Assembly: GCF_000007005.1 (NCBI RefSeq) | Contig: NC_002754.1 | Strand: one strand, 5' to 3' | Length of the DNA stretch: 64,000 bases | Source: Saccharolobus solfataricus P2 | Lineage (GTDB): Archaea; Thermoproteota; Thermoprotei_A; Sulfolobales; Sulfolobaceae | Shown here: in pieces, positions 22,583 through 57,861 of the stretch | How the letters are laid out: each line of letters begins with the position of its first letter | Position numbering within the stretch: position 1 is the stretch's first letter | The notes under the pieces: model-generated | The model's input: the letters and a program-made list of their open reading frames with translations, nothing else | Told to the model about the DNA's origin: nothing | Database searches by the model: none | Position numbers and translations under genes: made by a program

Positions 22583-23812
22583 ATGACTCTAGGTATTGCA
22601 TTCGTAGGAAGTGGGTTTTCGGCTAAGTTTCATTTAAGGGGATTAGTGGGAGTTAGAAATGTAGAAGTCAAGGGAGTATATTCAAGAAATCTAAACTCAT
22701 CTAAAGAATTCGCTATGTTATCTGAGCAATTAGGATTAGGGAAACCTAAAGTGTATAGTGATATAAGTAAAATGCTCTCTGATAAGGAGATTAATGCAGT
22801 ATGGTTAACCGTTCCCAATGACGTACATTTAGAATACACAAAGTTAATTGCTGAAGAGGTTTCTCAAGGAAGGTCCAATATACACGGAATAACGATAGAG
22901 AAACCACTGGCAAGAAACGTGAAGGAAGCTAAGGAGATGATTAGATTAGTAGAGAAGGCTGGGCTATTGCATGGATATTTGGAGAATCAAATCTTTATGC
23001 CATCTGTAGTGAGGGCTAGAGAAGCTATTTGGGAGATTGGATCGAGGAATTCTGGAAGGCCATATTTAGCAAGAGCAGCTGAAGAGCACTCTGGTCCTCA
23101 TAATAGCTGGTTTTGGAGACCGACTATTTCCGGTGGAGGGGCATTAATAGATATGACTTGCCATAGTTTAGAGGCAACTAGATTTTTACTTACTGACCCA
23201 GCAAAGACTAAATCCTCACTTAAGCCGAAAACTGTATATGCGGAGACAAAAACGTTGAAGTGGAATAAGAAAGAGTACGCTCAATATTTAAAGGAAAAGT
23301 ATAACGTGGACTTCTTAAAGGAACCGGCTGAGGATTATGCACTAACCATAGTAACTTATGAGGACGATTTAGGTAATTCTGTATTGGCGGAGACTAGAAC
23401 TTCGTGGAACTATGTTGGGCCTGGGCTTAGGTTATCAGTAGAAGTGTTAGGACCAGAATACAGTGTTAATATCAATACTCTACAATCTGAACTTTCAGTG
23501 TTCTTTAGCAGGAACATTAAACTTCCCCAGTCTGAAGCTTTCGTCGAGAAACAAAATGCTGATCAAGGACTTATGCCGATTATACTTGATGAGGCAGTGG
23601 TTTACGGATATCAAGGAGAGGATAGGCATATGGTTGAGTCTTTTATATCCCGTAAGATGCCTTTTGAGAATTGGTATGATGGATTATTAATAGTCCAACT
23701 TATGATGCATGCCTACCTTTCAGCTGAAAATGGGAGGAAGATTAGTTTTGATCCGCAAAAAGTAGAGGACTTCATACCTAAAGTAGCTAGAGGATTATAT
23801 TCTGCCTTTTAA
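22583..23812 (+). CDS. Gfo/Idh/MocA family oxidoreductase
   Basis: GSGFSA, EKPLA and GGGALIDMTCH motifs. Confidence 0.9.
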   Translation: MTLGIAFVGSGFSAKFHLRGLVGVRNVEVKGVYSRNLNSSKEFAMLSEQLGLGKPKVYSDISKMLSDKEINAVWLTVPNDVHLEYTKLIAEEVSQGRSNIHGITIEKPLARNVKEAKEMIRLVEKAGLLHGYLENQIFMPSVVRAREAIWEIGSRNSGRPYLARAAEEHSGPHNSWFWRPTISGGGALIDMTCHSLEATRFLLTDPAKTKSSLKPKTVYAETKTLKWNKKEYAQYLKEKYNVDFLKEPAEDYALTIVTYEDDLGNSVLAETRTSWNYVGPGLRLSVEVLGPEYSVNINTLQSELSVFFSRNIKLPQSEAFVEKQNADQGLMPIILDEAVVYGYQGEDRHMVESFISRKMPFENWYDGLLIVQLMMHAYLSAENGRKISFDPQKVEDFIPKVARGLYSAF

Positions 23813-23896
23813 AAAAATACATTTAATAGCATAACTGATAAGTTTGGAGTTTCTATACTGTAATTACAGAAAATGTACTTTTTACTTAGTATGATG

Positions 23897-23913
23897 AAAG
23901 TAAAGTTTTTAAG
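23897..23913 (+). promoter_or_regulatory. BRE-TATA promoter with no downstream protein-coding ORF
   Basis: AAAGTAAAG-TTTTTAAG, the same pattern as the promoters at 24112 and 27674; predicted start near 23936. Confidence 0.55.
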
Positions 23914-23935
23914 CATAGATTTTCAATATGTATTT

Positions 23936-24010
23936 ATGGGATAGGGCCAGGACAAATGGGGTAGTAAAGGGGGTTATGGGGATTTAACGGGGAGTTGTCC
24001 TGGCCTCCCT
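23936..24010 (+). ncRNA. Candidate structured ncRNA: 11-bp hairpin enclosing four G-tracts
   Basis: GGCCAGGACAA (23945-55) pairs with TTGTCCTGGCC (23995-24005); the loop has G4-N7-G5-N4-G4-N7-G4; the only reading from the start is ATG GGA TAG. Confidence 0.45.
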
Positions 24011-24143
24011 TTCAAGAGATAAGGTTTGAACTCTTTTAAATGGGTTAATATAGTTATCCTTTACTTGTTAAGTTTACCAAGAACTGTATTACGAAAAGAC
24101 TATCGTAATAAAGTTTTTATAAATAAAGAGCATATCTTAACTC

Positions 24144-26315
24144 ATGGCAAGAGAAATAGGAAGACCCGTTAAGAGGATAATAGAAGATCCCTCTTTAATT
24201 ACCGGAAAAGGCAGATTTGTATACGATATTGACTTTAAGGGTACGCTTTACGCAGTATTTATAAGAAGCCAGTATTCACATGCAAAGATAAAGAGTATAA
24301 GATGCCCAGAAGGTGCGTTGTGCTACACCGCTAAGGATTTACCAGAGCTCATCGGATTAGCTAAAGAAGAGGCAATTTACCAAGGGCAACCATTAGCAGT
24401 TGTTTTAGCTGAAGATGAATACAAGGCTAGGGATTTAGCTGAACAAGTGGAAGTGGAATACGAACCATTACCTTCAGTTATTAATGTTGAGGAAGCTTTG
24501 AAAGATGTTAAAAAGGCTAAAAGTGATTTAAGCTCAAATATTGTATTACAAGATAATGTAGAGATAGGAGATGTAAATTCCGCATTTAAAAAAGCTTATA
24601 AGGTAGTTGAAGCCGAGATCATAAACCAAAGAGTAATTCCATCAGCAATGGAACCTAGGGGCGCTGTAGCGTACTTTGATGGAAGAAGACTAACGGTATG
24701 GAGCAGTACACAGAATGTATTTGGATTAAAGGACACTCTTTTACAATTCTTATCTAAGTATGGAGTAAATGATGTGAGGGTAGTCCAGCCTTTTGTCGGA
24801 GGAGCATTTGGTAGCAAAATCTACATTTATCCCGAAGAGGTTATAATATCCTATTTGGCAGTTCTTACTGGGAAGCCTATAAAGTGGTTTAATACTAGGA
24901 CTGAAGAGTTTATGTCGACAAATCACGGAAGGGACATGAGATTAAAGTTTAAGGCTGCCTTTGATAAGGAGGGTAAGTTATTGGGGATAGAAGGAACTTT
25001 GATCATGGATTTAGGTGCTCCAATAATGGAGATTTATGAGGATTCCTTCGGAATGGCTACTACGGCAGCTAGATTATTGGTCGGCAGATATAAGGTTAAT
25101 GCCATAAAGGTTAAGGTATTAGGTATTGCCACTAATAAGACATTTATAGGTCCCTATAGGGGTGCTGGTAGACCTGAGGCTACTTACTTCATAGAGAGAA
25201 TTCTTAACCTTGGAGCTAGAGCTTTAGGTGTTGATCAATTTGAGATTAGAGAAGTTAATATAATTGATGAGGTAAGTCACTATAATACTCCAACTGGAAT
25301 GTATTATGATAGCGGAAAATACAGGGAGGCATTAAAAATCGCTAAACCGTCTTATCATGAGCTATTAAGAAAACGTGACGAGTTAAGGGCTAAGGGTAAG
25401 TTAGCTGGAGTGGGAGTAGCTATTGTATCAGAGATAGCGTCCTTCGGGACAGGTACTGCTAGGGTTCAACTTACACCAAACGGTAGGATTCAAGTAGTGA
25501 GTGGGTTTACTCCGCATGGGCAAGGAGACGCTACTGCATTTGCACAAATAGCAGCTGAGGTATTCGACGTTGATGTAGGTAAAGTTGATGTGTTATGGGG
25601 AGATACGGATTTAATATCTCATGGAGGTTTAACTGGCGGCAGTACAACTTTAACAGTTGGAGGTTCTGCAGTATACGAAGCCTCAATAAGATTAAAAGAG
25701 AAGTTGCTTAGAGTTGTAGGTGAAAAGTTAGGTGTAAGGCCTGAGGAAATAGAGTATAAGAATGGGAAGTTCTACCATAAAAAGGGCGAAATGAGTTTAG
25801 CTGATACCGCTAGGGAAGCATTACGTATGGGAGTATATCCAGAGGAGCAATATTCTTACACAATTAGACCTTATACCTCTCCCTATGGAATACATATGGC
25901 ACTGGTGGAGGTAGATAGGGAGACTGGATTTGTAAAAGTATTGGAGTACAAGGCGTTTGACGATGTGGGAGTTGTTGTAAATCCACTTTTAGCTGAGGGA
26001 CAAGTTCATGGAGGTGCTCTTCAAGGTATTTCCCAAGCACTATATGAGGAAACTGTTTACTCACCAGAGGGTTCATTAATAACTTCTAACTTCTCCGATT
26101 ACGTTATTCCCACTGCTATGGAAGCTGTTAAAGTGGAGTGGAAGTCTCTAGCACTGGCTAAATCAGACACCCCATTAGGGTCTAAGGGAATAGGAGAACT
26201 GCCAACCATTGCATCAACTCCAACAATTCTTCACGCTGTAGAAGACGCCATAGGTAAAAACATCTATACAATGCCAACTAAACCAGAATTAATTTTAAAA
26301 CTTTTAAATAGCTAA
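24144..26315 (+). CDS. cutA: Xanthine dehydrogenase-family molybdopterin-binding large subunit (CutA/CoxL-like aldehyde oxidoreductase)
   Basis: GGAFGSK, YRGAGRPE, TPHGQG, GQVHGG..QG and KGIGE motifs. Confidence 0.9.
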   Translation: MAREIGRPVKRIIEDPSLITGKGRFVYDIDFKGTLYAVFIRSQYSHAKIKSIRCPEGALCYTAKDLPELIGLAKEEAIYQGQPLAVVLAEDEYKARDLAEQVEVEYEPLPSVINVEEALKDVKKAKSDLSSNIVLQDNVEIGDVNSAFKKAYKVVEAEIINQRVIPSAMEPRGAVAYFDGRRLTVWSSTQNVFGLKDTLLQFLSKYGVNDVRVVQPFVGGAFGSKIYIYPEEVIISYLAVLTGKPIKWFNTRTEEFMSTNHGRDMRLKFKAAFDKEGKLLGIEGTLIMDLGAPIMEIYEDSFGMATTAARLLVGRYKVNAIKVKVLGIATNKTFIGPYRGAGRPEATYFIERILNLGARALGVDQFEIREVNIIDEVSHYNTPTGMYYDSGKYREALKIAKPSYHELLRKRDELRAKGKLAGVGVAIVSEIASFGTGTARVQLTPNGRIQVVSGFTPHGQGDATAFAQIAAEVFDVDVGKVDVLWGDTDLISHGGLTGGSTTLTVGGSAVYEASIRLKEKLLRVVGEKLGVRPEEIEYKNGKFYHKKGEMSLADTAREALRMGVYPEEQYSYTIRPYTSPYGIHMALVEVDRETGFVKVLEYKAFDDVGVVVNPLLAEGQVHGGALQGISQALYEETVYSPEGSLITSNFSDYVIPTAMEAVKVEWKSLALAKSDTPLGSKGIGELPTIASTPTILHAVEDAIGKNIYTMPTKPELILKLLNS

Positions 26316-26393: not shown

Positions 26394-27527
26394 TTGAAGA
26401 CACTGAGACTCTACTCACTGCTTAACAATTTGGCTATTAGTCTCGTAAATCCCTTCATATCATTCTTTACTGCATCCAATGGAATAACGGGTGCATTATT
26501 GGCAATAGCATCCTCTGCTAATACTGCGTTTCCAGGGATAATCCAATATGCGTTAGCAAATCTGTACATAAAAGCAAAAAAGTTAATTACAATTGGAAGT
26601 TTGTTTGGGGGTTTACTGTGGATATTAATAGGGGTTTACATGATATACAATGAATATTTCGTGTTGGTTTACTCTATTATAACTGCTGTTCTTGGTGCAG
26701 CGAACTTCGGTTGGTTACTCATTTTGGATAAAATAAGTACAACTCATAGGGGAAGAACGTTAGCGTACTATAACTTTTACGCCTCAATAGGTGGTTTAAT
26801 AGCTACCTTAATAACTGGATTTATCGTAGGTAATAATTTAGACTTAATGCGGTACTTCTTTATCATCGCTGGTTTAATATACGTTTTTAACGCTTACGTA
26901 ATTTACAATTCCGATGTTGACGCGGAATTTGCAAGGGGTAATGGTATAAGATTGTTTTCATCAAATCTTGAAGTGAGAAAATTCATCTTGACTAACTTCA
27001 TCTTCACGTTTGTATGGTCAATGGCGTGGCCAATTTTTCCGTTAGCTCAAGTATATAAGTTCCATATGAACGAATTTCAGGTTGCTATAATTAACGTTAC
27101 AGGTGGAACTTCCACCCTAGCATTACAGAGGCTCGTGGGTAGATTAGTTGACAGACATAGAAAATACGTTATGTTCTTTGGTAGATTTGCCTTAGCAACT
27201 TTCCCACTTGCATATGCATTTTCCACCACACCTTACGAGATATATATTGCTAATCTAGTTTCTGGATTTACTAACTCTGCCTCAATCTCTTACACTGCGT
27301 TCCTATTTGACCACTCTAGCTATTACGAAAAGAGAATCAACATAGCTTTATACAATATGTTTAATGGAATCGCCGCGCTTTTAGGTTCAACAATTTCAAG
27401 TGTGATGTTCAATGTTATTTCAGATTGGTTCAGTCTAGTAGTTGCCATAAATATCATGTTAATTGGGATAGGGGTAATGAGAATATTAATGTCACTACTC
27501 TATTTGAAAATAAAAGAGGTTTCTTAA
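26394..27527 (+). CDS. MFS transporter (paralogue of lacTr)
   Basis: About 12 TM segments; shares NPFISFF/SPFISFV and WPIFPLAQVYKFHMN with 36032..37183; TTG start. Confidence 0.85.
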   Translation: MKTLRLYSLLNNLAISLVNPFISFFTASNGITGALLAIASSANTAFPGIIQYALANLYIKAKKLITIGSLFGGLLWILIGVYMIYNEYFVLVYSIITAVLGAANFGWLLILDKISTTHRGRTLAYYNFYASIGGLIATLITGFIVGNNLDLMRYFFIIAGLIYVFNAYVIYNSDVDAEFARGNGIRLFSSNLEVRKFILTNFIFTFVWSMAWPIFPLAQVYKFHMNEFQVAIINVTGGTSTLALQRLVGRLVDRHRKYVMFFGRFALATFPLAYAFSTTPYEIYIANLVSGFTNSASISYTAFLFDHSSYYEKRINIALYNMFNGIAALLGSTISSVMFNVISDWFSLVVAINIMLIGIGVMRILMSLLYLKIKEVS

Positions 27528-27697: not shown

Positions 27698-28789
27698 GTG
27701 TTAGCTATGAAATTAGGAATTGTAGGACTGGGAGGATGGGTAACTGGTGCTCATATTCCAGCACTAACTGACCTAGGAATAAAAGTGGATTATTGTGCAG
27801 ATATAGATGAAAAAAGAGTGAAAGATCTCTCTCAAAAAACGGGGTGTAAAGGTTATTTAGATTATAAAGAAATGTTAAGGAATGAAAATCCAGACCTTGT
27901 TTTAGTAGCAGTACCCCATAGCCTTCACGCAATTATAGCATTAGATGCCATAAATAATGATGCTAATGTTTACGTGGAAAAACCAATGGCTACTTCATTT
28001 CAAGAGGCTTTAACACTAGTAGAAGCTTCGAGGAAAAGAAATAAGATATTAGTTGTAGGTCATGAAAATAGGTTTAACCCAGCAATGTTAATTGCTAAGA
28101 AATTGATAAGAGGTGGTGAAGTAGGTAAAATATACCACATGAGAGGATTTTATATAAGACAGAGAGGAATACCTACATCACCAACCTTCATTAAAAAGGA
28201 TTTAGCAAAAGGTGGGGCAGTATTTGATATAGGTACACACATCATAGATTTATTACTTTTCCTCTCAGATTTCCCAACGCCTAAAAGTGTTACAGGTAAG
28301 ACATATAATGCTTTCTCTGAGGACAAAACTAAGTTCTCTGCTTATCCCTCGCCTAACTTGCCTAACTTTAAGGTTGAGGTTGAAGATTTTGGCTCAGCCT
28401 TTTTAAAATTAGGAGACGAGATATCAGCATACGTGGAGGTGAGCTGGGCTTCATATATAAAAGAAAACAAAATGGAAGTAGTGATTTTGGGCGATAATGG
28501 TGGAATACATATAGATAATGGAGTGTTAAATTTCATGCGGAATATAGAGGATGAACTCTTCATCAGTAGCCCTTTAACTCAACAAAAAGGAAGCGTATAT
28601 AGAGAGGTGTGGAGAACTGTAATGGAATCCATTTCAAAAGGATTTCCAGAATACCCATTGTGTTCAGCAGAACAAGGTGCAATAGGAGTAGCAATACTGG
28701 AAAGTATATATAAATCAGCTTTAGAAGGTAGAGAAGTAAAAATAGATATTCCACAATGGTTCCTTAAACAGTTTCAACCAAGAGCTTAA
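27698..28789 (+). CDS. Gfo/Idh/MocA family oxidoreductase; likely start ATG 27707
   Basis: GLGGW, EKPMA and GGAVFDIGTH motifs. Confidence 0.9.
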   Translation: MLAMKLGIVGLGGWVTGAHIPALTDLGIKVDYCADIDEKRVKDLSQKTGCKGYLDYKEMLRNENPDLVLVAVPHSLHAIIALDAINNDANVYVEKPMATSFQEALTLVEASRKRNKILVVGHENRFNPAMLIAKKLIRGGEVGKIYHMRGFYIRQRGIPTSPTFIKKDLAKGGAVFDIGTHIIDLLLFLSDFPTPKSVTGKTYNAFSEDKTKFSAYPSPNLPNFKVEVEDFGSAFLKLGDEISAYVEVSWASYIKENKMEVVILGDNGGIHIDNGVLNFMRNIEDELFISSPLTQQKGSVYREVWRTVMESISKGFPEYPLCSAEQGAIGVAILESIYKSALEGREVKIDIPQWFLKQFQPRA

Positions 28790-31355
28790 AGCTCTTCTTA
28801 TCTATTTTATCCAGATCAATTTCGTAAAGATTATCATTTTTATCAATCAAAACCACCTTAGACTCTAAGACAACTACGTTTCTCCTTCCAATCGTGTAGA
28901 CCTTTATTAAACCTCTATTAGTTTCTACGTCCCATTCCAATTGATCACCCTTTATATTAATTCCATTTATTTTCTTAACTAGGAATATTAAATTATTATA
29001 AGCTAATGCATTCTCTAATACTTTACGAGAGTTTTCTTCTAGTTTAGTGTAATCCTCTATCAAGAATATCTCCTTACCGCTCTCGTCATAAAGACCTATA
29101 AACGTCGGTTTAGTTATTGGAAATAACATTTTTGGCACTAAAGCCTTGTAGACCTTCCCTTTATAAATAACATCTACGGTACTTCTCCTAATTGATTGAT
29201 TTATCTTCACATTGCTAGTATCAATAAGATTTGTAATAATTTTTTCTTCTTCGCTATTGCGTTTCATTCTGGAAAAGATATTTTCCTCATTAATTTGTTC
29301 CTTAAACATTTTATAAAATTCCCCTTTCTTATTTAACAACTCAATTGGTTTTCCTTCCTCCACCACTTTACCATTACTTAAGACTATAACCTTATCTGAA
29401 TTCATAACCTCATGCACGTTATGCGTTATCATTATCACCGTCTTACCCTTAGAGACATCTATCATTGTTTCATAAACTTCTCTCTCACTTGTAACGTCCA
29501 AATTAGAAGTTGCCTCATCGAATATTAACACGTCAGGATTCTTTATAATTGCCCTCGCAATACTTAACCTCTGTCTCTGCCCTCCTGATAGGTACGTTCC
29601 CCTTTCCCCTAAAATTGTATCATAAGCGAATGGTAACTTAACTATCTCATCATGGATTTTGGCAATTTTACACGCTCTAATTATGTCAATCTCGCTTACA
29701 TTATCTGTTCCATATGCAACATTATATCCTACCGTGGTATCGAATAATACTACGTCTTGAGGTACGTAGGCTACTTTCCTTCTTAAATAATTTAAATCTA
29801 TTTCTCTAATATCTATACCATCAATTAGAATTCTACCCTCATTAACGTCATAGAACCTCAGAAGTAGTTTAGCTATTGTGCTCTTTCCAGAACCGCTTTT
29901 ACCAACAATTGCGACTTTCTCCCCTGGCTTTATGCCAATATTGATATCCTTAATTACAGGGAAGTGTGGATCATAACCGAAGTAAACATGTTCAAAACGT
30001 ATCTCAGCAGGCATATTAGGTCTCTTAGGGTTTTCCGGATTTGTTATTTGAGGTTTGGCTTCTAATACTTCCCTAATCCTCTCTGCAGAAGTTAATGATT
30101 GTTGTATGAATGGTAAGACGTTACTTAGATTATTGATTGGTCCATAAAACTGAGAAACGTAAGCTATAAACGCTGTTATTACGCCTATTTCTATAATGCC
30201 AGAGATTACCTCATGTCCTCCTACCCACCATATTAATACAGTTGAGAGATTAACTATGAATCCCATTAAAGGCCAGTATACGGAGTTCATCTTATTAATT
30301 GCAACACTGGATTCGTAAAGCTTATTCAGCATTTCCCTTAGCCTTTTGGACTCATATTCCTCTTTGGAAAAAGATCTAACAACGAGGAAGTTGGGTATGG
30401 TATCATTTATTCTAGAGGTAATATCAGCACTTCTTCTCCAATTTCTATGATAGAGCCTATGTGACTTTCTTCTATATGAGATTATCAGATATATAATTGC
30501 GGGTACTGGGATTAATATGAAAGCTGCTAACGTAGGATTTAATGTAAATAAAATAACTCCTATTCCAATTATTGTAAATAAGTTCGTAACAAGTGTGGGT
30601 AACCCCCAAACCAATAGCCAGTTTGTATTCCCAGCGTCAGTTGTAAGTCTAGAGAGTATCCTACTAGGAGATATTCTCTCTATAAATGAATAATCGTGAT
30701 TAATCGCATGTTTGTAAAGTATTTCCCTTAAATCGTTTATTATTCTAGAACCGAGATTGTTTAGTATTCTATTCTGAATAGATGACAGTAAGGCTAGTGC
30801 CGAATACGATACTATTAAATATATTATAATGTTAATGAAGAGAGTAGAAGGATGAGATGGCGATAACAATACGCTATCTATTAATATTTTAAGTAAGTAT
30901 GGAGGAACCAAATTAAGACCAGTAGTAATTAAGGAGAGAGTAGCGCCAACTATCATGGTCTTTCTATATCTAGAAGCAATGGTCCAAAGCCACCTTAGTG
31001 TACTTACACCAACTTTTGTAGTCTCTTCTCTCTCCTCATCCTTTACTTCTATCTGCTCACCTTTATTAAACGCGTCAATGACCTTCTTGAATAATTCCTC
31101 TTTTCTCTTGGTAAAATAAGCAATCTCAATTTCCTTACCGTCAGAAGTATAGCCTATTAACTTATCAACACTTATACCGGTCTCTAATGAGAGTTTTATC
31201 ACATTCTCTATACGAAATATTTCTTTATCGCCGTCGAAAACCAATATCTTATTGCCGTCAATTTGGACCAACTCTTCTTTCAAATTCAAATCTTTATCCA
31301 AATCGGTCTTAACTTCTGCCTTGAACTTCGAAGTCACTATAGATGCTTTCTTCAC
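28764..31355 (-). CDS. ABC exporter (TMD+NBD) with extra N-terminal domain and C-terminal DUF1854-like domain
   Basis: GKSGSGKS, VPQD, LSGGQRQR, LIFDEATS and ITH motifs; C-terminal FPIT..P..FIGL.DESGKEI...EWDVETNRG...DKKS pattern. Confidence 0.85.
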   Translation of the reverse strand: MKKASIVTSKFKAEVKTDLDKDLNLKEELVQIDGNKILVFDGDKEIFRIENVIKLSLETGISVDKLIGYTSDGKEIEIAYFTKRKEELFKKVIDAFNKGEQIEVKDEEREETTKVGVSTLRWLWTIASRYRKTMIVGATLSLITTGLNLVPPYLLKILIDSVLLSPSHPSTLFINIIIYLIVSYSALALLSSIQNRILNNLGSRIINDLREILYKHAINHDYSFIERISPSRILSRLTTDAGNTNWLLVWGLPTLVTNLFTIIGIGVILFTLNPTLAAFILIPVPAIIYLIISYRRKSHRLYHRNWRRSADITSRINDTIPNFLVVRSFSKEEYESKRLREMLNKLYESSVAINKMNSVYWPLMGFIVNLSTVLIWWVGGHEVISGIIEIGVITAFIAYVSQFYGPINNLSNVLPFIQQSLTSAERIREVLEAKPQITNPENPKRPNMPAEIRFEHVYFGYDPHFPVIKDINIGIKPGEKVAIVGKSGSGKSTIAKLLLRFYDVNEGRILIDGIDIREIDLNYLRRKVAYVPQDVVLFDTTVGYNVAYGTDNVSEIDIIRACKIAKIHDEIVKLPFAYDTILGERGTYLSGGQRQRLSIARAIIKNPDVLIFDEATSNLDVTSEREVYETMIDVSKGKTVIMITHNVHEVMNSDKVIVLSNGKVVEEGKPIELLNKKGEFYKMFKEQINEENIFSRMKRNSEEEKIITNLIDTSNVKINQSIRRSTVDVIYKGKVYKALVPKMLFPITKPTFIGLYDESGKEIFLIEDYTKLEENSRKVLENALAYNNLIFLVKKINGINIKGDQLEWDVETNRGLIKVYTIGRRNVVVLESKVVLIDKNDNLYEIDLDKIDKKSFKLLVETV

Positions 31356-31450: not shown

Positions 31451-32410
31451 ATGAAAATTGCTGTAGTTGGATGTGACGGCTTCGGAAAAGTACATTTAAG
31501 GGCTATGAGAAATATAAGTGGAATAGAGTATTATGTTTTCAGTAGGAACGAGGAAAAGGCAAGAGAATGTATGAAAGAGTTTAACGCTGAAGGTTATTTT
31601 ACAAGGTACGAGGACGTTATAAAATCGAATGTTGATATTGTTGACTTACTAGTGAGCCATGATCAGCATTACCCCATGGGAGTAATGGCAATGAAGGCTG
31701 GAAAGCACTTAATGTTAGAAAAACCAATAGCGAGAACAATAGAAGAGGCTATGGGATTGATAAACACTTCAAAAGACACCAAAAGAAAATTCATGGTTTT
31801 GGAGCAGTTCTACTTTGAATCATCAGTTAGAAAGGCTAAAGAACTTTTACCTAGATTAGGTAATTTATCCCTAATAATTGTGAGATCAATTCACTTGTAT
31901 CAACCAAAGGGGTGGAGGAGAGAAAAGGAGAAAATGGGAGGAGGAGCGCTTATAGATGGTGGAGTTCATTTCATAGATACATTGCTGAACTTAGGTGGGG
32001 AATACGAAAGTGTAAGGGGAGTTTGTGGAAAGTACTTCTCGGGAATAGAGGGAGAAGATCTAACCTTGGCTACCCTTAGGTTCAGGAAAGGACATCTAGG
32101 TTTATTAATGTATAGCTGGACAACTCCAAATCCTCCCAAAGTACCAGCATTTGAGATTTATGGCGAAAATGGGAGTATTATAGAAGATCCTAATACGAGA
32201 GTTATGGGGAAGGCTTATGGGGATCTAATATTGAACGTTGACGGTAAGGAGGAGAGAATAGAAGTCGAAAAGGTGAATCCAATAGAGGAGGAAATAAGGG
32301 GATTTGTAAAGGCAGTCAAAAATAATACCGAAGTACCTATGCCTCCTGAAATTGCCTTAAGGGATTTAAAGGCAGTCCTTGATATTTATAAGTCATGCGG
32401 ATATTCCTAA
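31451..32410 (+). CDS. Gfo/Idh/MocA family oxidoreductase
   Basis: GCDGFG, EKPIA and GGGALIDGGVH motifs. Confidence 0.9.
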   Translation: MKIAVVGCDGFGKVHLRAMRNISGIEYYVFSRNEEKARECMKEFNAEGYFTRYEDVIKSNVDIVDLLVSHDQHYPMGVMAMKAGKHLMLEKPIARTIEEAMGLINTSKDTKRKFMVLEQFYFESSVRKAKELLPRLGNLSLIIVRSIHLYQPKGWRREKEKMGGGALIDGGVHFIDTLLNLGGEYESVRGVCGKYFSGIEGEDLTLATLRFRKGHLGLLMYSWTTPNPPKVPAFEIYGENGSIIEDPNTRVMGKAYGDLILNVDGKEERIEVEKVNPIEEEIRGFVKAVKNNTEVPMPPEIALRDLKAVLDIYKSCGYS

Positions 32411-47324: not shown

Positions 47325-47410
47325 ATTAAAAGGAGGACAGGGTGGATCATAAATAAGGTCAGGGAAGAGAGGATCCACTTGACGGTCTTAGCGAGGGTCA
47401 CGATTCACGA

Positions 47411-48727: not shown

Positions 48728-49239
48728 GGAGTTGCTCTTTGATTAAATATTATTTCTAGTTCTTATGGGTTGATTATTGTCATATTGGCAACATAATTTG
48801 CTAGATACCCTAGTTGTGGATATGCTTGGTCTAATGCTATTGTGTACCATACTGCTGTTGCGTTGAATGGCGTACCGTCCGTAAAATACACATCATGTCT
48901 CAAGTATAATATTAACGCTAGTGTCTGTACTTTACCGTTAGGAGTGTTAACGTAACCAGTAGTCCACGTCCAATTAGTCGCTAACCAAGGAATAATTTGG
49001 CCATTGTCATAATTTACTAATGCTAATGGTTCATAGATAAACCACTCCCCGTCATCAACAAGATTAGGACTGCTCTACGGATTATAATTATCTTGCCACG
49101 TACCGATTGGCGAAGCTACAATTACAATGCTCCCTTCGGGTTGTACAGATGTAGACTGCGATATCGTCGGTATTATGAAAACTCCTATACTTATTAGCAT
49201 TAAAACAGAAATTATTCCAGAAATTATCTTTCTCGCCAT
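48728..49239 (-). pseudogene. 5' fragment of a family-5 (OppA/DppA-like) ABC solute-binding protein
   Basis: My translation: MARKIISGIISVLMLISIGVFII signal peptide, then FIYEPLALVN...IIPWLATNWTW...LRHDVYFTDGTPFNATAVWYT. In-frame stops at 49075-77 and 48763-65; cut off by the ISC1217-like end. Confidence 0.85.
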
Positions 49240-49609: not shown

Positions 49610-50416
49610 ATGGATTGGAAATTAGGAATTATCTCAGATGAGATCTCTCAAGATTTCGAGCATGCAGTAAAGGTAATAAAAGAGTTAGGTGCAAGCTATG
49701 TTGAAGTAAGAAATTTATGGAATAAGAATGTAACGCAACTATTGGATTCTGAATTTTCAGAAATGAAAAGGGTTGTTGAAAAGTATGGGCTTATCATATC
49801 CAATCTAGATTCTCCTAGCTTTAAGATATATATAGATGACGAAAAAGGTTATAAAGAACATTTACAAATTTTAAGGAAAGTAATAGAGTTAAGTAAAAAA
49901 TTGGATATAGCGTACACGAGAATATTCACTTTTTGGTATCAAGGAGAATTAAGATATTATATTGATAAGTTAGCTGAAAGATTCAATAGTGCTATAGATA
50001 TAGCTCAAAGTGAAGGGGTAATATTAGTCATAGAAAATGAGTACAGTTGTTTTGTAGGCACAGGGAAAGAGCTTAGAACATTCTTAGATAAAATAAGGAC
50101 GAAATGGGTTAAGGTATTATGGGACCCTGGAAATGCCTTCTTCGCTAGGGAGACGCCGTATCCAGACGGATATGAATTAATAAAAGGTGACATTATGCAC
50201 TTACACATTAAGGATGCAATGGTTAAAGATGGTCACTTTATTTGGATGCCAGTAGGGAAGGGAATGATAAACTATAAGGAACAATTTAGAGCGTTAAGGG
50301 GTAGTGCTCATGTCATATCTTTAGAAACTCACTATAGAAATAGCGCAAATGACCCAGAGGCTAGTACGAGAGAGTCCTTTAATGGTATAATTAAAATATT
50401 GAAAGAGCTAAGTTAA
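49610..50416 (+). CDS. Sugar phosphate isomerase/epimerase (IolE/XylA-like TIM barrel)
   Basis: IENE, WDPGN, HLHIKD and SLETH metal-site motifs. Confidence 0.9.
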   Translation: MDWKLGIISDEISQDFEHAVKVIKELGASYVEVRNLWNKNVTQLLDSEFSEMKRVVEKYGLIISNLDSPSFKIYIDDEKGYKEHLQILRKVIELSKKLDIAYTRIFTFWYQGELRYYIDKLAERFNSAIDIAQSEGVILVIENEYSCFVGTGKELRTFLDKIRTKWVKVLWDPGNAFFARETPYPDGYELIKGDIMHLHIKDAMVKDGHFIWMPVGKGMINYKEQFRALRGSAHVISLETHYRNSANDPEASTRESFNGIIKILKELS

Positions 50417-50857
50417 TTTGATTGTTTTTAAAAAAAGATTTTTATCTTAATGCTTTAGTTCATTCGTAGAATATTTTTCCATTAAATTACTACTATCTTC
50501 ATTTCAAGTAGTGATCAGATTCATAATTCCTTCTTGTAACACCTCTTAACTCATTGCTAAAATTTAACAAGTCCAAAAAGCGTTATTTTAATAATCTCGT
50601 CATTAACCACTGCGTTACTTCTCTGTACAATCTCTGTCTGATTTCGTATAGCATTTATAGGAAAATCGTTACACTTTTACGTTACGTTAAAAATATATAA
50701 TGAATCTTTCCTGGTTAGATGAAAAATGTTTATTGATAAGCTATAATATTAAGAAGTACAATGAAAGATATTTATAAATACATGGATAAATATTTTGACT
50801 TTTTATGATAAGGGAATTTCCTAAAACTACTAATGGTATACTTCCAATGATCCATTC

Positions 50858-52054: not shown

Positions 52055-52285
52055 GTGTATCAAACTACCACAACTACTACCACAACTAGCACGTCCACCA
52101 CCACAAGTACTGTTACTACCACAAGTGTTTCAACTACTACAAGTGTCTCCACGTCTGTAAGTACTACTACAGCTACTGTTACTACTACTGTCAGTTCATC
52201 CAACACTACACTATACGCCATAATAGCTGTTGTAATAATAGTCGTAATAATAGTGGGAGTGATACTAGGCCTTAGAAGAAGATAA
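52055..52285 (+). pseudogene. Orphan Ser/Thr-rich linker plus C-terminal membrane anchor (3' end of a surface or binding protein)
   Basis: Poly-T/S stretch, hydrophobic helix and RRR stop-transfer tail; begins exactly at the IS end. Confidence 0.75.
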
Positions 52286-52328: not shown

Positions 52329-54593
52329 TTACTCTATTTGTACATTTGATAGAAATATTCTTCTTTCCATAATGGGTTTCGTCTCCTTTATTCTGAATGT
52401 ATCCTTAAGAATTATGTTTTCAGACGAATTTCCTATTAATATCTGATACTCGCCTTTCTCTACTACTAGTCGCATAAAGTTATCGTAAAACGCTAACGCT
52501 TCCATGGGTAGTGCGAATTTGACTCTTCTCTTTTCACCAGGTTTAAGATGAACTTTAGCAAATCCTTTTAATTCCTTAACTGGTCTAGCAACGCTAGAAA
52601 AGCTTTTTGAAATATATAGTTGGACTACCTCATCGCCTTCCATATTTCCCACATTTTTAACGTCAAGTAAAATGGTGATATAACTTAAAGGTCCAACCTC
52701 TTTTGGGGTAACTTCAAGGTTAGAATATTCGAATTGTGTGTAACTTAAACCATATCCAAACGTAAATAGTGGAGATGAATGGAGCATAACATATGGTCTA
52801 AAGGAAGACGGTTTCCTACTATAATATAATGGTATTTGCCCAGTATCCATTGGGAACGTTATAGGTAATCGTCCACTTGGATTGTAGTCTCCAAATATTA
52901 TATCTGCTATGGCATTTCCTCCTTCTTCTCCAGGGAACCATGCTTCAATTATCGCTTTGACGTAATTAATTATTGGTGAAAGGACCAAGGGCCTACCATT
53001 AATTAAAACTAAAATTATTGGTTTTCCGGTCTTATATAGTTCTTTAAGTAATTCCTCTTGAACTCCAAGTAATCTAAGACTAGCCCTATCGTTACCCTCC
53101 CCAGTGACCGCTTGATATTTCTTAAACTCTTCTTCAGAAGGAATATCTGTCCAGGATAGTGGTAACCCTGATTTCTCACCCATGACTGCTATTATTACAT
53201 CAGCTTGCTTGGCTATTTCTATTGCCTCGGAGAACCCTTCTTTCGATTCACCTGCAATATCACACCCCTTTGCGTAAAGTACTTTGCCTTCTCCAACTTT
53301 TTTCGCTATTCCTTGGAGTACCGTTACTATCTCTATCCCGCTATCTATATTTAGGTGTCCGGTATAAGTATAGTCTCCTAACATGTTTCTTGGATCATTG
53401 GCATTTGGCCCTATCACTGCAATTTTATTAATATTCTTACTTAAAGGTAACATATTGTTCTCGTTTTTGAGGAGGACTATCGACTCTCTGGCAGCCTTTA
53501 ACGCTAATTCTCTAGATTTTCGATCATCCAACCTTTCTGGAACTGCGCTTTCGTCGACAAATGGATTATCTAAAAGTCCAAGTCTTTCTTTAATTCGCAA
53601 AACTCTCTCCACTGCTCTATCTATTATAGCCTCTGAGACTAGACCCTCCTTTATAGCAGTAACTAAAGGTTCACCGTAACAATCTATGGTCGGAAACTCA
53701 ATGTCCACTCCAGATTCGAGAGCCAAAATAGCTGCCTCCATCTTATTTGACGCAACCTTGTGTATTGCCTCTAATTGTCTAATACCATCGTAATCTGATA
53801 CCACTATTCCGTCAAATCCCCATTCTTGTCTTAGAATATTAGTTAGTAATTGGGGATTACCATGACATGGGACTCCATCAATTTCATGATATGCTGGCAT
53901 AATTGACATTACTTTTCCTATCTTTACTGCCACCTCAAATGGGAATAAGAACGTTTCCCTTAATTCTCTATTTCCCACATGTACTTGTGCAATATTTCTT
54001 CCACCCTCTGGAAAACCATGGGCTGCGAAGTGCTTTGCAGTTGCCACTAATTGGGTCTCACCTTGTAATCCAGTAATATATGCTAATCCCATTGAAGCTA
54101 CTAGATATGGGTCTTCCCCGTAAGTCTCTTCACACCTCCCCCATCTTGGGTCTCTGCAAACATCTAATACTGGAGAAAGACATTGGTTAACCCCAATTAG
54201 CCTTCCTTGAGATCTTATGGTTGATGCTACATTTGTAAGTAATTCTGGATTCCAAGTACTGGCTAGCCCAATAGCTTGGGGAAACGCTGTAGAAGAATAT
54301 CCCATTAAGCCAGATAGACATTCCTCATGTATTATAGCTGGAATTTTGAGCCTGGTATTTTCCACCAGAAACTTTTGAACTTTATTCACCAGTTTTACGA
54401 CTTCTTTTGGTTTTAGACCTAATCTGCTACCAGCTACTCTGGTGATCTGCCCTATTCCTAATTTTAGATATTTCCTCGCTTTTTCCTCAGAGAATTCCTT
54501 TCCCTCCATAAGAGCGTCTATTGGTATAGCTTGGAGTTGAGCTATTTTTTCCTCTATGCTCATCTGATTTAGGAGACTCTTTATAGCTGTCAC
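52329..54593 (-). CDS. GH3 beta-xylosidase/alpha-L-arabinosidase
   Basis: RDPRWGRCEE, KHFAAHG and VSDY motifs, C-terminal Fn3-like domain; 754 aa. Confidence 0.93.
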   Translation of the reverse strand: MTAIKSLLNQMSIEEKIAQLQAIPIDALMEGKEFSEEKARKYLKLGIGQITRVAGSRLGLKPKEVVKLVNKVQKFLVENTRLKIPAIIHEECLSGLMGYSSTAFPQAIGLASTWNPELLTNVASTIRSQGRLIGVNQCLSPVLDVCRDPRWGRCEETYGEDPYLVASMGLAYITGLQGETQLVATAKHFAAHGFPEGGRNIAQVHVGNRELRETFLFPFEVAVKIGKVMSIMPAYHEIDGVPCHGNPQLLTNILRQEWGFDGIVVSDYDGIRQLEAIHKVASNKMEAAILALESGVDIEFPTIDCYGEPLVTAIKEGLVSEAIIDRAVERVLRIKERLGLLDNPFVDESAVPERLDDRKSRELALKAARESIVLLKNENNMLPLSKNINKIAVIGPNANDPRNMLGDYTYTGHLNIDSGIEIVTVLQGIAKKVGEGKVLYAKGCDIAGESKEGFSEAIEIAKQADVIIAVMGEKSGLPLSWTDIPSEEEFKKYQAVTGEGNDRASLRLLGVQEELLKELYKTGKPIILVLINGRPLVLSPIINYVKAIIEAWFPGEEGGNAIADIIFGDYNPSGRLPITFPMDTGQIPLYYSRKPSSFRPYVMLHSSPLFTFGYGLSYTQFEYSNLEVTPKEVGPLSYITILLDVKNVGNMEGDEVVQLYISKSFSSVARPVKELKGFAKVHLKPGEKRRVKFALPMEALAFYDNFMRLVVEKGEYQILIGNSSENIILKDTFRIKETKPIMERRIFLSNVQIE

Positions 54594-54616: not shown

Positions 54617-54641
54617 ATTTAAGAGTTCTGGCTTACATGTT
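54617..54641 (-). promoter_or_regulatory. ara-box-like element plus TATA of the GH3 gene
   Basis: AACATGTA-N11-TTAAAT; the TATA ends 24 bp before the GTG start. Confidence 0.65.
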
Positions 54642-54954
54642 ATATCTCGACTGATTTAAATACTCTACTACTTAATGACCTAACAATTCCCTTAAATAAG
54701 AGAGATATTTTGGTAACATGAAATCACCGTTTTCCAGTTCAGGATACCACATTTTCTCCCACTCGACTGATATGTAATATTTATACCCAAATCCCTTTAG
54801 ATCCATAACTATTTTCTTTAGGGGAATAATCCCTTTACCCGGTTCAACGAATACTCTTTTATTATTCTTTATCACAAAATCCTTCACATGAACTTGAAAT
54901 ATTCTTTCAGATATTAAAGGGAAAACTTCCTCATGGGAATTGTTTGCGTAAATT

Positions 54955-56393
54955 CAGTGGTGTTTCACCAATTTTACTCAAAATGATACAATTTCTATGG
55001 AAGAGAAAAATATCAGAGCGGAGTTAGAAAAATCGGCTTATTTCAACACAAGAAGCAAAAAATTTTCATATTTGTTGAAGAAACTAACAGAAAACGAGTT
55101 TATATATAAAGAGTAATACCATTTGTCTAGTATTATCAATAGAGGAAAGTAGGTGGAAGGACGAGATGAACAAGAAAAGGTTAAAGCGAGGGACTCCATA
55201 ACTCCGTTATGCAAACCATGATATTACCCAAAACGGAGCTGAAGTCCCTCGCTATAACTTTAGCAACAAACAATATTAACGTTATCTCTCAAGATCTAGA
55301 CCCGGAAATAGTGAAAGCAGCACCATCCTTGCTAACCGGAAACAGAGGAAAATACTACTTGAAGGTAGTAAGACGAGGCGAGAAAGTAATTAGTAAAGGT
55401 CAGAGAACCTTCAAGTTCTACCCAATCTACAGAGAAGTAAAGGGAGAGATCAACGTAGTCGCTGTAGATGAGACCGGATTAACCGTGGGAGAAAAGGAAC
55501 AAGAAAAAGCAGAGGGCTTTCTACTCTACAACTGGAAGAGAAAAGGAGTAAAGATGAGATCCTTGGACCTCGTATATCCCTTAAGGTTACCCCTCCTAGT
55601 GGAGGTAGCAGATTTGAGAAGCGACAGTCCATCACAGTTCCTACTCAGGAGCGTGAGGGAAGTAAGCCAATACATGGAAATAGATTACGTTGTAGCTGAC
55701 GCCGGATTCTTGAACCTAGGGGTCATCAAGGAAATGCCCGTGAAGACCATTGTGAGAGGAAAGTCGAACTTGAAGGGATTCAAGGAACTATCTAACGTTC
55801 CATTAGTTGAGAAGAGATACGAGGTTAAGGACAAGGTTTACGTTGCGTATAGGGTCTTGGAATTTGAAGGGCTTTATTATTACGATGTGGTTTACGTTAA
55901 GGGGAAGCCGAGGCACTTCATGTTCGTAACGAACTTCGAGGGAGATCCCTATGAACTGGCTGAACTCTATAGGTTGAGGTGGCAAGTTGAGGAGGGTTTT
56001 AAGGTTAGGAAGGCAAGGATAAGGTATGTTAGGAAGTTGAGTAATAAGATCTTCTTGTTCCTCTATTACACGGTTCTGGATTCTGCGTGGAATCTAGTGA
56101 ATCATCTTCTCTTTAACTTCAAGTCCACGTGTAAGAAGGTTTTGTCCTTCGATTCATTCGTCAAGCTTCTCTAACTTTCTCGGTGTTCAGAGGAGACTAT
56201 GCACGTCGTTTTCACCACGTGAGAAAAATTCAGAATTCTCCTCTTATTATTAGAATTGTACGCTATATTTTTTGCAAATTATTTTAACATGTTATGTTTC
56301 ATAATAATTTTATTGTTTTTCTCTATATCAATCTCTTTTTGAAAGGACTAATATTATATCTTTCAAATGAAATAATTTGGTGAAACACCACTG
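54955..56393 (+). mobile_element. ISC1439 copy 3
   Basis: Exactly 1439 bp; TSD GCGTAAATT on the left versus GCGGTAAATT on the right (one extra G). Confidence 0.96.
55209..56174 (+). CDS. ISC1439 transposase
   Basis: Protein identical to copy 1. Confidence 0.95.
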   Translation: MQTMILPKTELKSLAITLATNNINVISQDLDPEIVKAAPSLLTGNRGKYYLKVVRRGEKVISKGQRTFKFYPIYREVKGEINVVAVDETGLTVGEKEQEKAEGFLLYNWKRKGVKMRSLDLVYPLRLPLLVEVADLRSDSPSQFLLRSVREVSQYMEIDYVVADAGFLNLGVIKEMPVKTIVRGKSNLKGFKELSNVPLVEKRYEVKDKVYVAYRVLEFEGLYYYDVVYVKGKPRHFMFVTNFEGDPYELAELYRLRWQVEEGFKVRKARIRYVRKLSNKIFLFLYYTVLDSAWNLVNHLLFNFKSTCKKVLSFDSFVKLL

Positions 56394-56923
56394 GCGGTAA
56401 ATTACATTAGCTGGGTCATATACGAATCCTATGTCCTCCTCGAGCTCTTGCAATAACTTAACTATGTTATCCTTTTTAGCTAAACTGTCATGAGTTTCTA
56501 TAAGAATTTTAACTGAATAATCTTCAGCTATTCTATTCATCCTATTTAATGACTCGGCTATTCTATGAATTGCACTTTTTTCAGAGAATTCTCCTCCATA
56601 TACTCTTACTCCAAGAGCATTCAAGCTATTAGCCATTTTTATTAACGTTTCCAATGCTTTCTCGTTCCTTTTTCTCTCAGATTCATCAGAAAAATGGAAC
56701 CTAGTATATCCTGCCAGATCAGATATTTTGATTGATGAGAGAATTTCTAACGCTTTTCTATTTATCGGGAACTCCGGTTTCAAATGTTTACCATCGTCTG
56801 CTACTCTCAACTCTAGTCCATCGAACCCAAACCTACTTACCCTCTCTACAACATCTTCTAAACTTAACTCTGGATAAGCCAAACTAGTGAACACGATTTC
56901 CATTGAAATAGATTAGCAATATG

Positions 56924-56933
56924 TTTTATAAGT
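56924..56933. promoter_or_regulatory. Shared palindromic TATA between divergent genes
   Basis: TTATAA (56926-31) is centred about 25 bp from both start codons (56903 and 56953). Confidence 0.5.
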
Positions 56934-56952
56934 TTTCTACGAAGATAGAGAT

Positions 56953-57861
56953 ATGGATGGAGTTTTCCTAACCAACGTAACACCTTTCACCAAAACATTG
57001 GAGCTAGACTTAGAAGGGCTAAAAAGAATCGTGGAGTTCGCACAGAACTCCGGGTATAAGTATATTGTGCCTTTAGGTACTGCTGGTGAATTCTCCTCTT
57101 TAACCGTTGAAGAGAAAGTTAGAGTTGTTGATCATGTGAGAAGAGCATTAAGTAAGGGCGAAATTATAGCTGGTGCCTCATCTACCTCATTTTTAGAAAC
57201 TGGTGAGCTTTGCAAGAAATATAAGGAGATAGGTGTCGATAAAATTATGGTCTTACCTCCTTATTACTTAAAGGGTAATGAAAAGGGACTGATGGAGTAT
57301 TTCTTTAAGGTGGCTGAACTATGTGATTCAACCATGGTATTATATAACAATCCATCATCAACGGGAGTGGATCTCTCTCCTCAACTAATAAAGAGATTAA
57401 ATGATATGATACCTAGTTTTAGGGTGCTAAAGGAGGCTAGGTATAATGTTGTAGAATTTAAGGAAGTGGTAAGACTAGTAGGGGATAAGATAGATGTAAT
57501 AGATGGTTTAGAAGAGAGAGCGCTATTGGGTCTTGTTTTAGGGGCTAAAGGATTTACAACTTCAATGGGCTCCTTTTCCTCTTTACCCCTTATGATTTAT
57601 GAGAGTTATGAGAAAAAGAGGAATATTGATACTGCCATAAGACTATATGATCTGCTCTTAGAGTATAGGTCATTTATAAAACTCCCCTTGACAATGTCCC
57701 ATTTAGCTAAGCTAGGGGCGTGGCTACGTGGTTTAATCTCAAGCTATGCTACACGACCACCGCTACCAAATTTGGACGATGTGGTAAGTGAGGATGTTAA
57801 GAGAAAGATGATAGAGAAAATAAATCAAATAATAAGCTTTGAGAAAAATACTATAGAGTAA
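56953..57861 (+). CDS. DapA/NAL-family class I aldolase/dehydratase
   Basis: GTAGEF, YNNP and Schiff-base LKEA motifs. Confidence 0.88.
   Translation: MDGVFLTNVTPFTKTLELDLEGLKRIVEFAQNSGYKYIVPLGTAGEFSSLTVEEKVRVVDHVRRALSKGEIIAGASSTSFLETGELCKKYKEIGVDKIMVLPPYYLKGNEKGLMEYFFKVAELCDSTMVLYNNPSSTGVDLSPQLIKRLNDMIPSFRVLKEARYNVVEFKEVVRLVGDKIDVIDGLEERALLGLVLGAKGFTTSMGSFSSLPLMIYESYEKKRNIDTAIRLYDLLLEYRSFIKLPLTMSHLAKLGAWLRGLISSYATRPPLPNLDDVVSEDVKRKMIEKINQIISFEKNTIE

Follow-up and report, generated by a model that had tools for sequence, protein, structure and literature searches.

Candidate parts of two conserved archaeal keto-sugar modules in a glycosidase island of Saccharolobus solfataricus

We analyzed a 64-kb stretch of the Saccharolobus solfataricus P2 genome (contig NC_002754.1; hereafter, the window), which has a G+C content of about 36%, is dense in insertion sequences (IS), and, judged from its predicted genes, is a glycosidase or glycoside-utilization island of an S. 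solfataricus-type genome, with its nearest homologues in Saccharolobus and Sulfolobus. Gene families were called with Pfam in open reading frames (ORFs) of at least 100 amino acids, and a gene described as missing or absent is missing from these 64 kb. A sequence-only reading of positions 22583 to 57861 had proposed that the island encodes an oxidative route of glycan cleavage, in which dehydrogenases of the Gfo/Idh/MocA family (Gfo) and metal-dependent TIM-barrel enzymes work beside the hydrolases. The explanation that we favor, with moderate confidence, is that the window holds parts of two separately conserved archaeal keto-sugar modules, neither complete within the window, with the chemistry proposed below. 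By comparison with gene clusters of other archaea, what the window contains is the dehydrogenase and aldo-keto reductase (AKR) part of one predicted module, called B, and the TIM-barrel part of the other, called A.

Dehydrogenases and TIM barrels at the locus

The four Gfo genes of the earlier reading were all recognized by Pfam, at 22583..23812, 27698..28789, 31451..32410, and 33902..34969 (each on the + strand), and encode proteins of 409, 363, 319, and 355 amino acids, respectively, which are named here by their start positions. They are indeed divergent, sharing 23-34% identity pairwise, and alignment revealed a Rossmann motif and an E/DKP motif in every one. In Gfo 33902 and its Ignisphaera orthologue, DKP replaces the EKP of the family, and a Tyr takes the place of the catalytic His of the other three window proteins (D-x-G-x-H/Y). 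Pfam likewise identified the AKR (32407..33441, - strand), the amidohydrolase, the DapA-like gene, and the two major facilitator superfamily (MFS) transporters that had been reported within this range. A GH5-like/GH42M-like putative glycosidase gene (20748..22541, + strand; Pfam Cellulase, 6e-9) shares its strand with Gfo 22583 and ends 41 bp before that gene, and from this ORF spacing the two genes are probably co-transcribed.

The dehydrogenase genes belong to a cluster that is not a chance assembly, because Sulfolobus tengchongensis, in which the Gfo used as query has a 77% identical counterpart, has the same gene order. The shared order comprises the large subunit of a molybdopterin oxidoreductase (24144..26315, +), an MFS transporter (26394..27527, +; MFS_1), Gfo 27698, an exporter-type ATP-binding cassette (ABC) protein fused to DUF1854 (28764..31355, -), Gfo 31451, the AKR, Gfo 33902, an Amidohydro_2 protein of a family that includes sugar lactonases (34961..35821, -), a second MFS transporter (36032..37183, +), a GH1 beta-glycosidase (38637..40106, +), an SSO3021-like putative glycosidase (40103..41890, -), and a GH31 alpha-glycosidase (41914..44109, -). 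All were assigned by Pfam apart from the SSO3021-like protein, which had no match in the Pfam copy used; the domains PF28584 GH_cat and PF27250 SSO3021_2nd are present in its 41% identical orthologue from Sulfodiicoccus. The Amidohydro_2 gene is convergent with Gfo 33902 in both S. solfataricus and S. tengchongensis. The ABC protein, which consists of a transmembrane domain, an ATPase, and DUF1854, sits between two Gfo genes in both species as well.

Sequence searches of the PDB set two of the dehydrogenases apart. Gfo 33902 matched DgpA1 at 2.2e-53 over residues 2-352 and DgpA at 1.4e-41, with the next match at 5e-20; Gfo 27698 matched the same two proteins over its full length, at 1.7e-40 and 9e-39, with the next match at 1e-20. 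By this measure, a DgpA-type glycoside 3-oxidoreductase is by far the best solved relative of both proteins, with a gap of 20 to 30 orders of magnitude. In the same search, DgpA was not the closest characterized relative of Gfo 22583 or Gfo 31451: the best matches of the former were 6nor and 6jw6 (about 1e-17), which we take to be the aminoglycoside 3''-dehydrogenases GenD2 and KanD2, and the latter found generic, GFOR-like relatives only. None of the four proteins reached the cut-off of the NCBIfam models for BT2158/BT2159, levoglucosan dehydrogenase, IolG, Gfo6, or the archaeal UDP-GlcNAc 3-dehydrogenase; for the BT2158/BT2159 models (NF058561 and NF058563), all four scored 14-50 bits against cut-offs of 650-750.

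The two metal TIM barrels with E-D-H-E sites that the sequence-only reading had described were confirmed by Pfam and by alignments. TIM1 (49610..50416, +) is an intact AP_endonuc_2 (xylose-isomerase-like) protein whose metal tetrad E142/D172/H199/E239 aligns to the ligands of UlaE and is invariant in 22 TIM1 sequences. An IS copy of 1,439 bp (54955..56393, +) divides TIM2 into a C-terminal piece of 93 codons (54672..54953, -; found by comparison with orthologues) and an N-terminal piece of 170 codons (56394..56903, -; found by Pfam and the same comparison). Both pieces are otherwise open, and they were searched separately and via intact orthologues; the tetrad E138/D165/H191/E233 is invariant in 18 TIM2 sequences. 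This divalent-metal site is common to the whole superfamily, so it does not discriminate for eliminases.

The reference for an eliminase of this fold is AtOGE, a Mn-dependent 3-keto-O-glycoside beta-eliminase whose catalytic base, H134, is part of a YHNH motif that immediately precedes the first Glu of the metal site (PMC10628242). We identified PDB entry 8bvk as AtOGE by its residue numbering, since H134 in YHNH, D163, and H189 match the published positions (PMC10628242). In profile searches of the PDB, TIM1 and TIM2 found 'Art22', MJ1311, UlaE, IolI, ketose 3-epimerases, and IolE; AtOGE, the lyases 8tcs, 8tcd, and 8tct, and DgpB/CarB were not listed at E<=0.01 for TIM1 alone, for the TIM1 profile, or for the TIM2 profile. 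The YHNH motif is found neither in TIM1, which has I-E-N-E-Y-S at that strand, nor in TIM2, which has E-T-H-D, with its His after the Glu. The AlphaFold models of the two proteins have pLDDT values of 97 and 96, and their top Foldseek matches were ketose 3-epimerases, 'isomerase Art22' (TM 0.83-0.86), and UlaE; YcjR, IolE/IolI, and AtHYD ranked lower for both, DgpB-C appeared for TIM1 only, at rank 38, and AtOGE was not in the top 50 matches of either. An attempt to tell lyase from epimerase by fold gave no separation, as epimerases, IolE/IolI, YcjR, and AtHYD (and DgpB-C for TIM1) lay within a few orders of magnitude.

The nearest relatives of TIM1 and TIM2 are thus UlaE, ketose 3-epimerases, and 'isomerase Art22' (3cqh, 2ou4, and 8z1i), together with the 3-keto-D-glucoside 4-epimerase YcjR (6wn6), and UlaE and the ketose 3-epimerases share the tetrad with its UlaE-like spacing. 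However, identity to these enzymes is 15-21%, and the NCBIfam scores fall far below cut-offs: for TIM1, about 50 bits with the L-ribulose-5-phosphate/ketose 3-epimerase models (cut-offs, 200-317) and 25 bits with IolE TIGR04379 (cut-off, 290); for TIM2, 40 bits with a ketose 3-epimerase-type model and 45 bits with IolO. Art22 is an isomerase according to its PDB title, and no paper on its function was found in the searchable literature. On these alignments and models, TIM1 and TIM2 appear to fall outside the eliminase subfamily, and nothing marks either as an eliminase.

Two modules in other archaea

A third TIM-barrel type, which we call TIM3, stands beside orthologues of the window's Gfo genes in other archaea. 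In Ignisphaera sp. 4213-co (locus L089), TIM3 is accompanied by Gfo proteins 49% identical to 27698 and 64% identical to 33902 and then by a convergent Gfo 66% identical to 22583, with PfkB kinases and an oligopeptide-type ABC importer as neighbors. In Caldivirga (L086), it is co-operonic with a 27698-like Gfo (42%), next to a divergent AKR 38% identical to that of the window; across these two genera, the 27698 orthologues co-operonic with TIM3 show 42-50% identity. In a Sulfolobaceae metagenome-assembled genome (MAG), TIM3 shares an operon with a DgpA-clade Gfo and a sugar MFS transporter (order, Gfo-TIM3-MFS), and hot-spring contig L095 holds a Gfo, TIM3, and a 22583 orthologue (52% identical) together. 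No orthologue of Gfo 31451 was found in the fetched module loci. Separately, in Sulfodiicoccus (L002, 2932-5774), the genes for an orthologue of 33902 (54% identical), a PfkB kinase, and a DeoC-type aldolase form a row beside a GH38 gene; this gene content suggests that a sugar derived from a mannoside is oxidized, next phosphorylated, and finally split by aldol cleavage.

The TIM3 profile matched AtOGE (8bvk) at 1e-22, the 8tcs, 8tcd, and 8tct entries at 3e-19 to 2e-15, and IolE at 6e-11. The 8tc entries are annotated as sugar-phosphate isomerases and belong to the same deposition series as the glycoside 3-dehydrogenases 8tdf, 8tdh, and 8tdi. All 16 TIM3 sequences compared have YHNH, D158, H187, and E236, so that TIM3 of these relatives shares with AtOGE and the AL1/BT1-type lyases the YHNH His, the Asp, and the ligands of the metal; in contrast, TIM1 and TIM2 of the window have neither the sequence match nor the motif. 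TIM3 itself was not found in the window, where permissive tblastn gave only superfamily-level matches to known genes. Nor was an eliminase-type TIM barrel found in the syntenic S. tengchongensis cluster, and no cultured Saccharolobus was among the top 120 TIM3 homologues. The window also has no DUF1080 lyase/hydratase: the earlier reading had cautioned that it saw none, and no DUF1080 protein was found by Pfam among the scanned ORFs of at least 100 amino acids.

As proposed here, module B would follow the logic of the DgpA/DgpB-C system of C-glycoside deglycosylation in gut bacteria (PDB 7xr9, 9m3d, and 7drd), of whose DgpA the 27698 and 33902 proteins are full-length homologues: by analogy, NAD-dependent oxidation at C3 would be followed by elimination in a metal TIM barrel. 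It differs from that system in that the window has no DgpB/DgpC-type heterodimeric eliminase, the archaeal partner TIM3 is more like AtOGE and the AL1/BT1-type lyases than like DgpB, and three different dehydrogenases and an AKR accompany the archaeal TIM3. In Agrobacterium, the oxidizing enzyme is a flavoprotein and not a Gfo enzyme (PMC10628242). Altogether, this comparative evidence is good enough to make an oxidation-then-elimination route in the archaeal relatives a plausible and reasonable prediction.

TIM1 and TIM2 belong to a different set of genes. TIM1 homologues are widespread in Thermoproteota, and in every fetched locus outside Saccharolobus with a TIM1 at least 50% identical (L002-L022 and L026), a distinct Gfo subfamily, here named Gfo-T, lies within 800 bp of TIM1. 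These loci span Sulfodiicoccus, Ignisphaera, Caldivirga, a Sulfolobaceae MAG, Nitrososphaerota/Caldarchaeales, Marsarchaeota, and Tardisphaera, and in most of them TIM2 stands between Gfo-T and TIM1 or beside Gfo-T. The split gene of the window is 45-57% identical to TIM2 of the Gfo-T loci and is hence its orthologue. The typical archaeal operon is accordingly predicted to be Gfo-T–TIM2–TIM1 (module A), seen in more than 20 loci outside the window, and such a pairing of two TIM barrels with a dedicated Gfo was not found described for UlaE or the ketose 3-epimerases. Gfo-T proteins are 40-63% identical to one another and 21-27% identical to any window Gfo. Their best PDB matches are 3q2i/3q2k (4e-52), which are presumably WlbA-type UDP-GlcNAcA (nucleotide-sugar) 3-dehydrogenases, followed by glucuronide 3-dehydrogenase (1e-35). 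Orthologues of AKR 32407 (36-38% identical) stand divergently beside Gfo-T in four loci of Nitrososphaerota/Caldarchaeales type.

Gfo-T is missing from the window, where permissive tblastn again gave only superfamily-level matches to known genes, and TIM1 sits on a conserved island of about 2 kb amid IS debris. One flank of this island (48745..49200, -) is a remnant holding the first 152 of the 699 residues of an SBP_bac_5 binding-protein gene (tblastn, 69% identity to the S. shibatae gene), and the other (50592-50648, -) holds the last 19 codons of an alpha/beta-hydrolase gene; both genes are intact beside TIM1 in S. shibatae. TIM2 of S. shibatae B12 (L001, 878-1576) lacks about 35 C-terminal residues, including the last Glu of the metal site, and has no Gfo-T nearby; decay of TIM2 thus seems to have set in separately in two Saccharolobus lineages. 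With Gfo-T absent from the window, TIM2 interrupted, and TIM1 isolated amid IS remnants, and with the shortened TIM2 of S. shibatae, module A appears to be a relic that is decaying in this genus.

In Ignisphaera (L009, 2590-14312), module A lies amid GH2, a UxaE-like gene of the tagaturonate-epimerase family, and a fourth TIM barrel. At locus L004 (4391-14205), the module lies amid pectate lyase, GH28, and rhamnogalacturonan-lyase genes. The neighbors at both loci hint that its substrate may be a uronide or uronate.

Neighboring genes and insertion sequences

In order, the glycosidase-type genes of the window are GH38, GH1, SSO3021-like, GH31, GH3, GH2, and GH116. The seven interleaved glycosidases of the earlier reading shrink, between 22583 and 57861, to GH1, GH31, GH3 (52329..54593, -), and one SSO3021-like putative glycosidase; GH38, the GH5-like gene, GH2 (57982..59694, -), and GH116 flank this range. 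The short-chain dehydrogenase/reductase (SDR; adh_short) that it had also counted lies outside as well, at 16889..17788 (-; Pfam adh_short_C2, 1e-62), and is one of the genes of the non-phosphorylative Entner-Doudoroff type (glucose dehydrogenase, MR_MLE dehydratase, and SDR) found upstream at 10.9-17.8 kb. In Ignisphaera and in a Desulfurococcaceae MAG, orthologues of the GH2 protein (66% identical) are encoded no more than 7 kb from module A. The molybdopterin large subunit encoded at 24144 is a paralogue of glyceraldehyde dehydrogenase alpha (721 bits with the NCBIfam glyceraldDH_alpha model; cut-off, 790) and an orphan, with no medium- or small-subunit gene adjacent, an arrangement that S. 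tengchongensis keeps. A DHDPS/DapA-family gene (56953..57861, +) is divergent from TIM2 here and in S. shibatae; it was considered as a companion of module A and rejected, since the pairing is confined to Saccharolobus and the DHDPS neighbor in Ignisphaera is not orthologous.

Three copies of a 1.44-kb IS with a DDE transposase, 99% identical and recognized by Pfam and by comparison of the copies, occur in the window, at 1-1436 (-), 37152-38590 (+), and the TIM2 site; the element has terminal inverted repeats (CAGTGGTGTTTCACCAA...). The copy at 37152..38590 is flanked by a 9-bp target duplication (AAGATACTC). It cuts into the 3' end of the second MFS gene, upstream of GH1, so that the final 31 bp of this MFS gene lie within the IS. 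Dense IS debris with transposase fragments (DDE_Tnp_1, DUF4322, and DUF772) fills 44200-48500 and 50400-52000, and the G+C content rises to as much as 0.47 at 46-48 kb, compared to about 0.36 elsewhere. Beyond the main subjects, a 76-codon ORF at 52055-52285 (+) encodes a near-pure run of Thr, Ser, and Val followed by a hydrophobic anchor and RRR, which could be a heavily O-glycosylated, mucin-like membrane peptide or a chance ORF; two adjacent ORFs at 59812-60291 and 60619-61539 (+) match the first and last parts of DUF2139 and probably represent a single gene that a frameshift or small insertion has interrupted.

Proposed chemistry and its alternatives

We propose that the module B genes of the window, namely, Gfo 22583, Gfo 27698, Gfo 33902, and the AKR, act on keto-sugars as follows. 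As their relationship to DgpA would predict, the dehydrogenases most likely oxidize a secondary hydroxyl, probably that at C3, with NAD(P)+, the substrate being either an imported glycoside or a sugar freed by the neighboring glycosidases. In the relatives, TIM3, as an AtOGE-type, Mn-dependent enzyme, would then break the glycosidic bond by beta-elimination, with the His of YHNH as the base, and the resulting keto-sugar would be reduced by the AKR or by one of the Gfo enzymes. With TIM3 in neither the window nor the S. tengchongensis cluster, the eliminating step in these organisms may be encoded elsewhere, replaced, or absent. TIM1 and TIM2 would most likely epimerize, isomerize, or eliminate on the keto product of Gfo-T. 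Whether the organism performs oxidative glycoside cleavage depends on genes outside the window.

Several observations weigh against the two-module explanation. Identity of about 35% to DgpA fixes neither the oxidized carbon nor the substrate, and all NCBIfam scores lie far under the curated cut-offs, the best weak matches of Gfo-T, TIM2, and TIM3 being IolG, IolO, and IolE. The convergent pair of Gfo 33902 and Amidohydro_2, found in two genera, would suit oxidation of an aldose at C1 and hydrolysis of the lactone. Finally, among the more distant metagenomic TIM3 loci, 39 had sufficient flanking sequence, and only 6 of these had a Gfo adjacent to TIM3. Adjacency of TIM3 and Gfo as a general rule was consequently rejected (6/39), and the link is strong only among close archaeal relatives.

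A bolder interpretation, which we put forward tentatively and at low probability, is that Thermoproteota carry modules B and A as two widespread, uncharacterized keto-sugar systems and that in one version TIM1 or another enzyme took over elimination in Saccharolobus. On this interpretation, module B would be a thermophilic form of non-Koshland glycoside cleavage, with three Gfo proteins, an AtOGE-like eliminase, an AKR, and no DUF1080 protein, and module A a new route of keto-sugar epimerization or elimination, possibly for uronides.

The earlier reading had itself cautioned that routes of inositol or free-sugar oxidation fit the same families, and this caution stands. Oxidation of free sugars, which we judge fairly improbable overall and a live rival for the Saccharolobus cluster, would make the Gfo proteins aldose 1-dehydrogenases, the Amidohydro_2 protein a lactonase, the DapA-like protein an aldolase or dehydratase of 2-keto-3-deoxy acids, and the molybdenum enzyme an oxidase of the aldehyde, and it would extend the non-phosphorylative routes encoded just upstream. 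The glucose dehydrogenase, dehydratase, and SDR genes found there, the conserved pairing of 33902 with Amidohydro_2, the close relationship of the molybdenum subunit to glyceraldehyde dehydrogenase alpha, and the existence of Gfo/Idh/MocA aldose-1-dehydrogenases (PMC9795676) are all in line with it. Yet the solved aldose-1-dehydrogenases are distant: the galactose 1-dehydrogenase 4ew6 matched 33902 at only 1e-8, against 2e-53 for DgpA, and the window Gfo proteins scored 40-94 bits with the Gfo6 xylose dehydrogenase model (NF041392; cut-off, 350). Moreover, in lineages other than Sulfolobaceae, the partners of the orthologues are eliminase-type TIM barrels, sugar kinases, and ABC importers and not lactonases.

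That the island itself runs oxidative glycoside cleavage, with a Gfo making a 3-keto-glycoside and the 49610 protein or the split TIM barrel acting as beta-eliminase, now appears quite unlikely. The DgpA-like proteins 27698 and 33902 would supply the oxidation, TIM1 is intact, with a confident model (pLDDT 97) and a full metal site, and its fold matches include DgpB-C, the hydratase AtHYD, and the 3-keto-glucoside epimerase YcjR; known eliminases of this fold can, besides, be unrelated in sequence (PMC10628242). Against this, TIM1 and TIM2 lack YHNH and lie nearest to Art22, UlaE, and ketose epimerases, with AtOGE outside the top 50, and across archaea they accompany Gfo-T and none of the four Gfo types of the window. 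TIM2 is disrupted, and TIM1 lies 15 kb from the nearest Gfo gene, with IS debris around it.

The proposal of oxidative cleavage is therefore kept in part: the DgpA-like 27698 and 33902 and the orthologues of 22583, 27698, and 33902 that adjoin TIM3 speak for it, but the eliminase, TIM3, is not in the window, and the two TIM barrels that had been cast as lyases belong to different subfamilies without an eliminase sequence match, have Gfo-T as operon partner, and include one inactivated by an IS. The comparison with characterized glycoside enzymes and with IolG/IolE that the sequence-only reading had called for divides in the same way, with 27698 and 33902 nearest to DgpA, the TIM barrels nearest to Art22, UlaE, and the epimerases, and all scores below the IolG and IolE cut-offs. 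Its observations were mostly right, and its interpretation, which we regard as partly supported, was right in spirit for the dehydrogenases and wrong on the cleaving TIM barrels and on completeness.

Catabolism of inositol or another cyclitol, with IolG-like Gfo proteins and with TIM barrels acting as dehydratases, isomerases, or epimerases like IolE, IolI, or IolO, seems to us more doubtful again, and we rank it as a weaker rival than oxidation of free sugars. The Iol system does bring the two protein families together in one locus, and its IolE dehydrates a keto-cyclitol by beta-elimination; IolI and IolE also turned up in the fold and sequence searches, and PfkB kinases adjoin the orthologues in Ignisphaera and Sulfodiicoccus. 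The best weak NCBIfam matches are IolG for Gfo-T (147 bits), IolO for TIM2 (45 bits), and IolE for TIM3 (93 bits), but these are all two- to sixfold under the curated cut-offs, and the window Gfo proteins reach 55-98 bits with IolG TIGR04380 against a cut-off of 355. TIM3 is closer to AtOGE than to IolE, the contexts are those of glycoside utilization, with glycosidases and oligosaccharide transporters, and no IolD/IolB-type or other iol genes were seen in them.

A biosynthetic role of the Gfo proteins, as nucleotide-sugar 3-dehydrogenases for amino or keto sugars of S-layer or lipid glycans, is very improbable: the presumed WlbA-type best PDB matches of Gfo-T (3q2i/3q2k) speak for it, and the archaeal UDP-GlcNAc 3-dehydrogenase is the top NCBIfam model for 27698, 31451, and 33902, but at 110-149 bits, far under its cut-off of 450, and the cluster has no aminotransferase or glycosyltransferase and a catabolic context of glycosidases and transporters in several genera.

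Returning to the two-module explanation, IS activity would have dismantled one module of this island, and the other is without its bond-cleaving step in the window, so gene lists alone may overstate what such an island can do. As far as the searchable literature shows, glycoside cleavage by oxidation and elimination has been described only in bacteria; no description of an archaeal 3-keto-glycoside pathway or of the Gfo-T–TIM2–TIM1 operon was found there, and searches on the presumed SSO30xx locus tags and on S. solfataricus Gfo/MocA enzymes returned nothing relevant. Gfo-T–TIM2–TIM1, kept across many archaeal lineages with no characterized member, is a clean target for function discovery. If the proposed chemistry holds for the archaeal clusters of Gfo, TIM3, and AKR, it would extend this mechanism to hyperthermophilic archaea, and these clusters would be a source of heat-stable, broad-specificity glycoside-cleaving enzymes, including enzymes for bonds that resist hydrolases.

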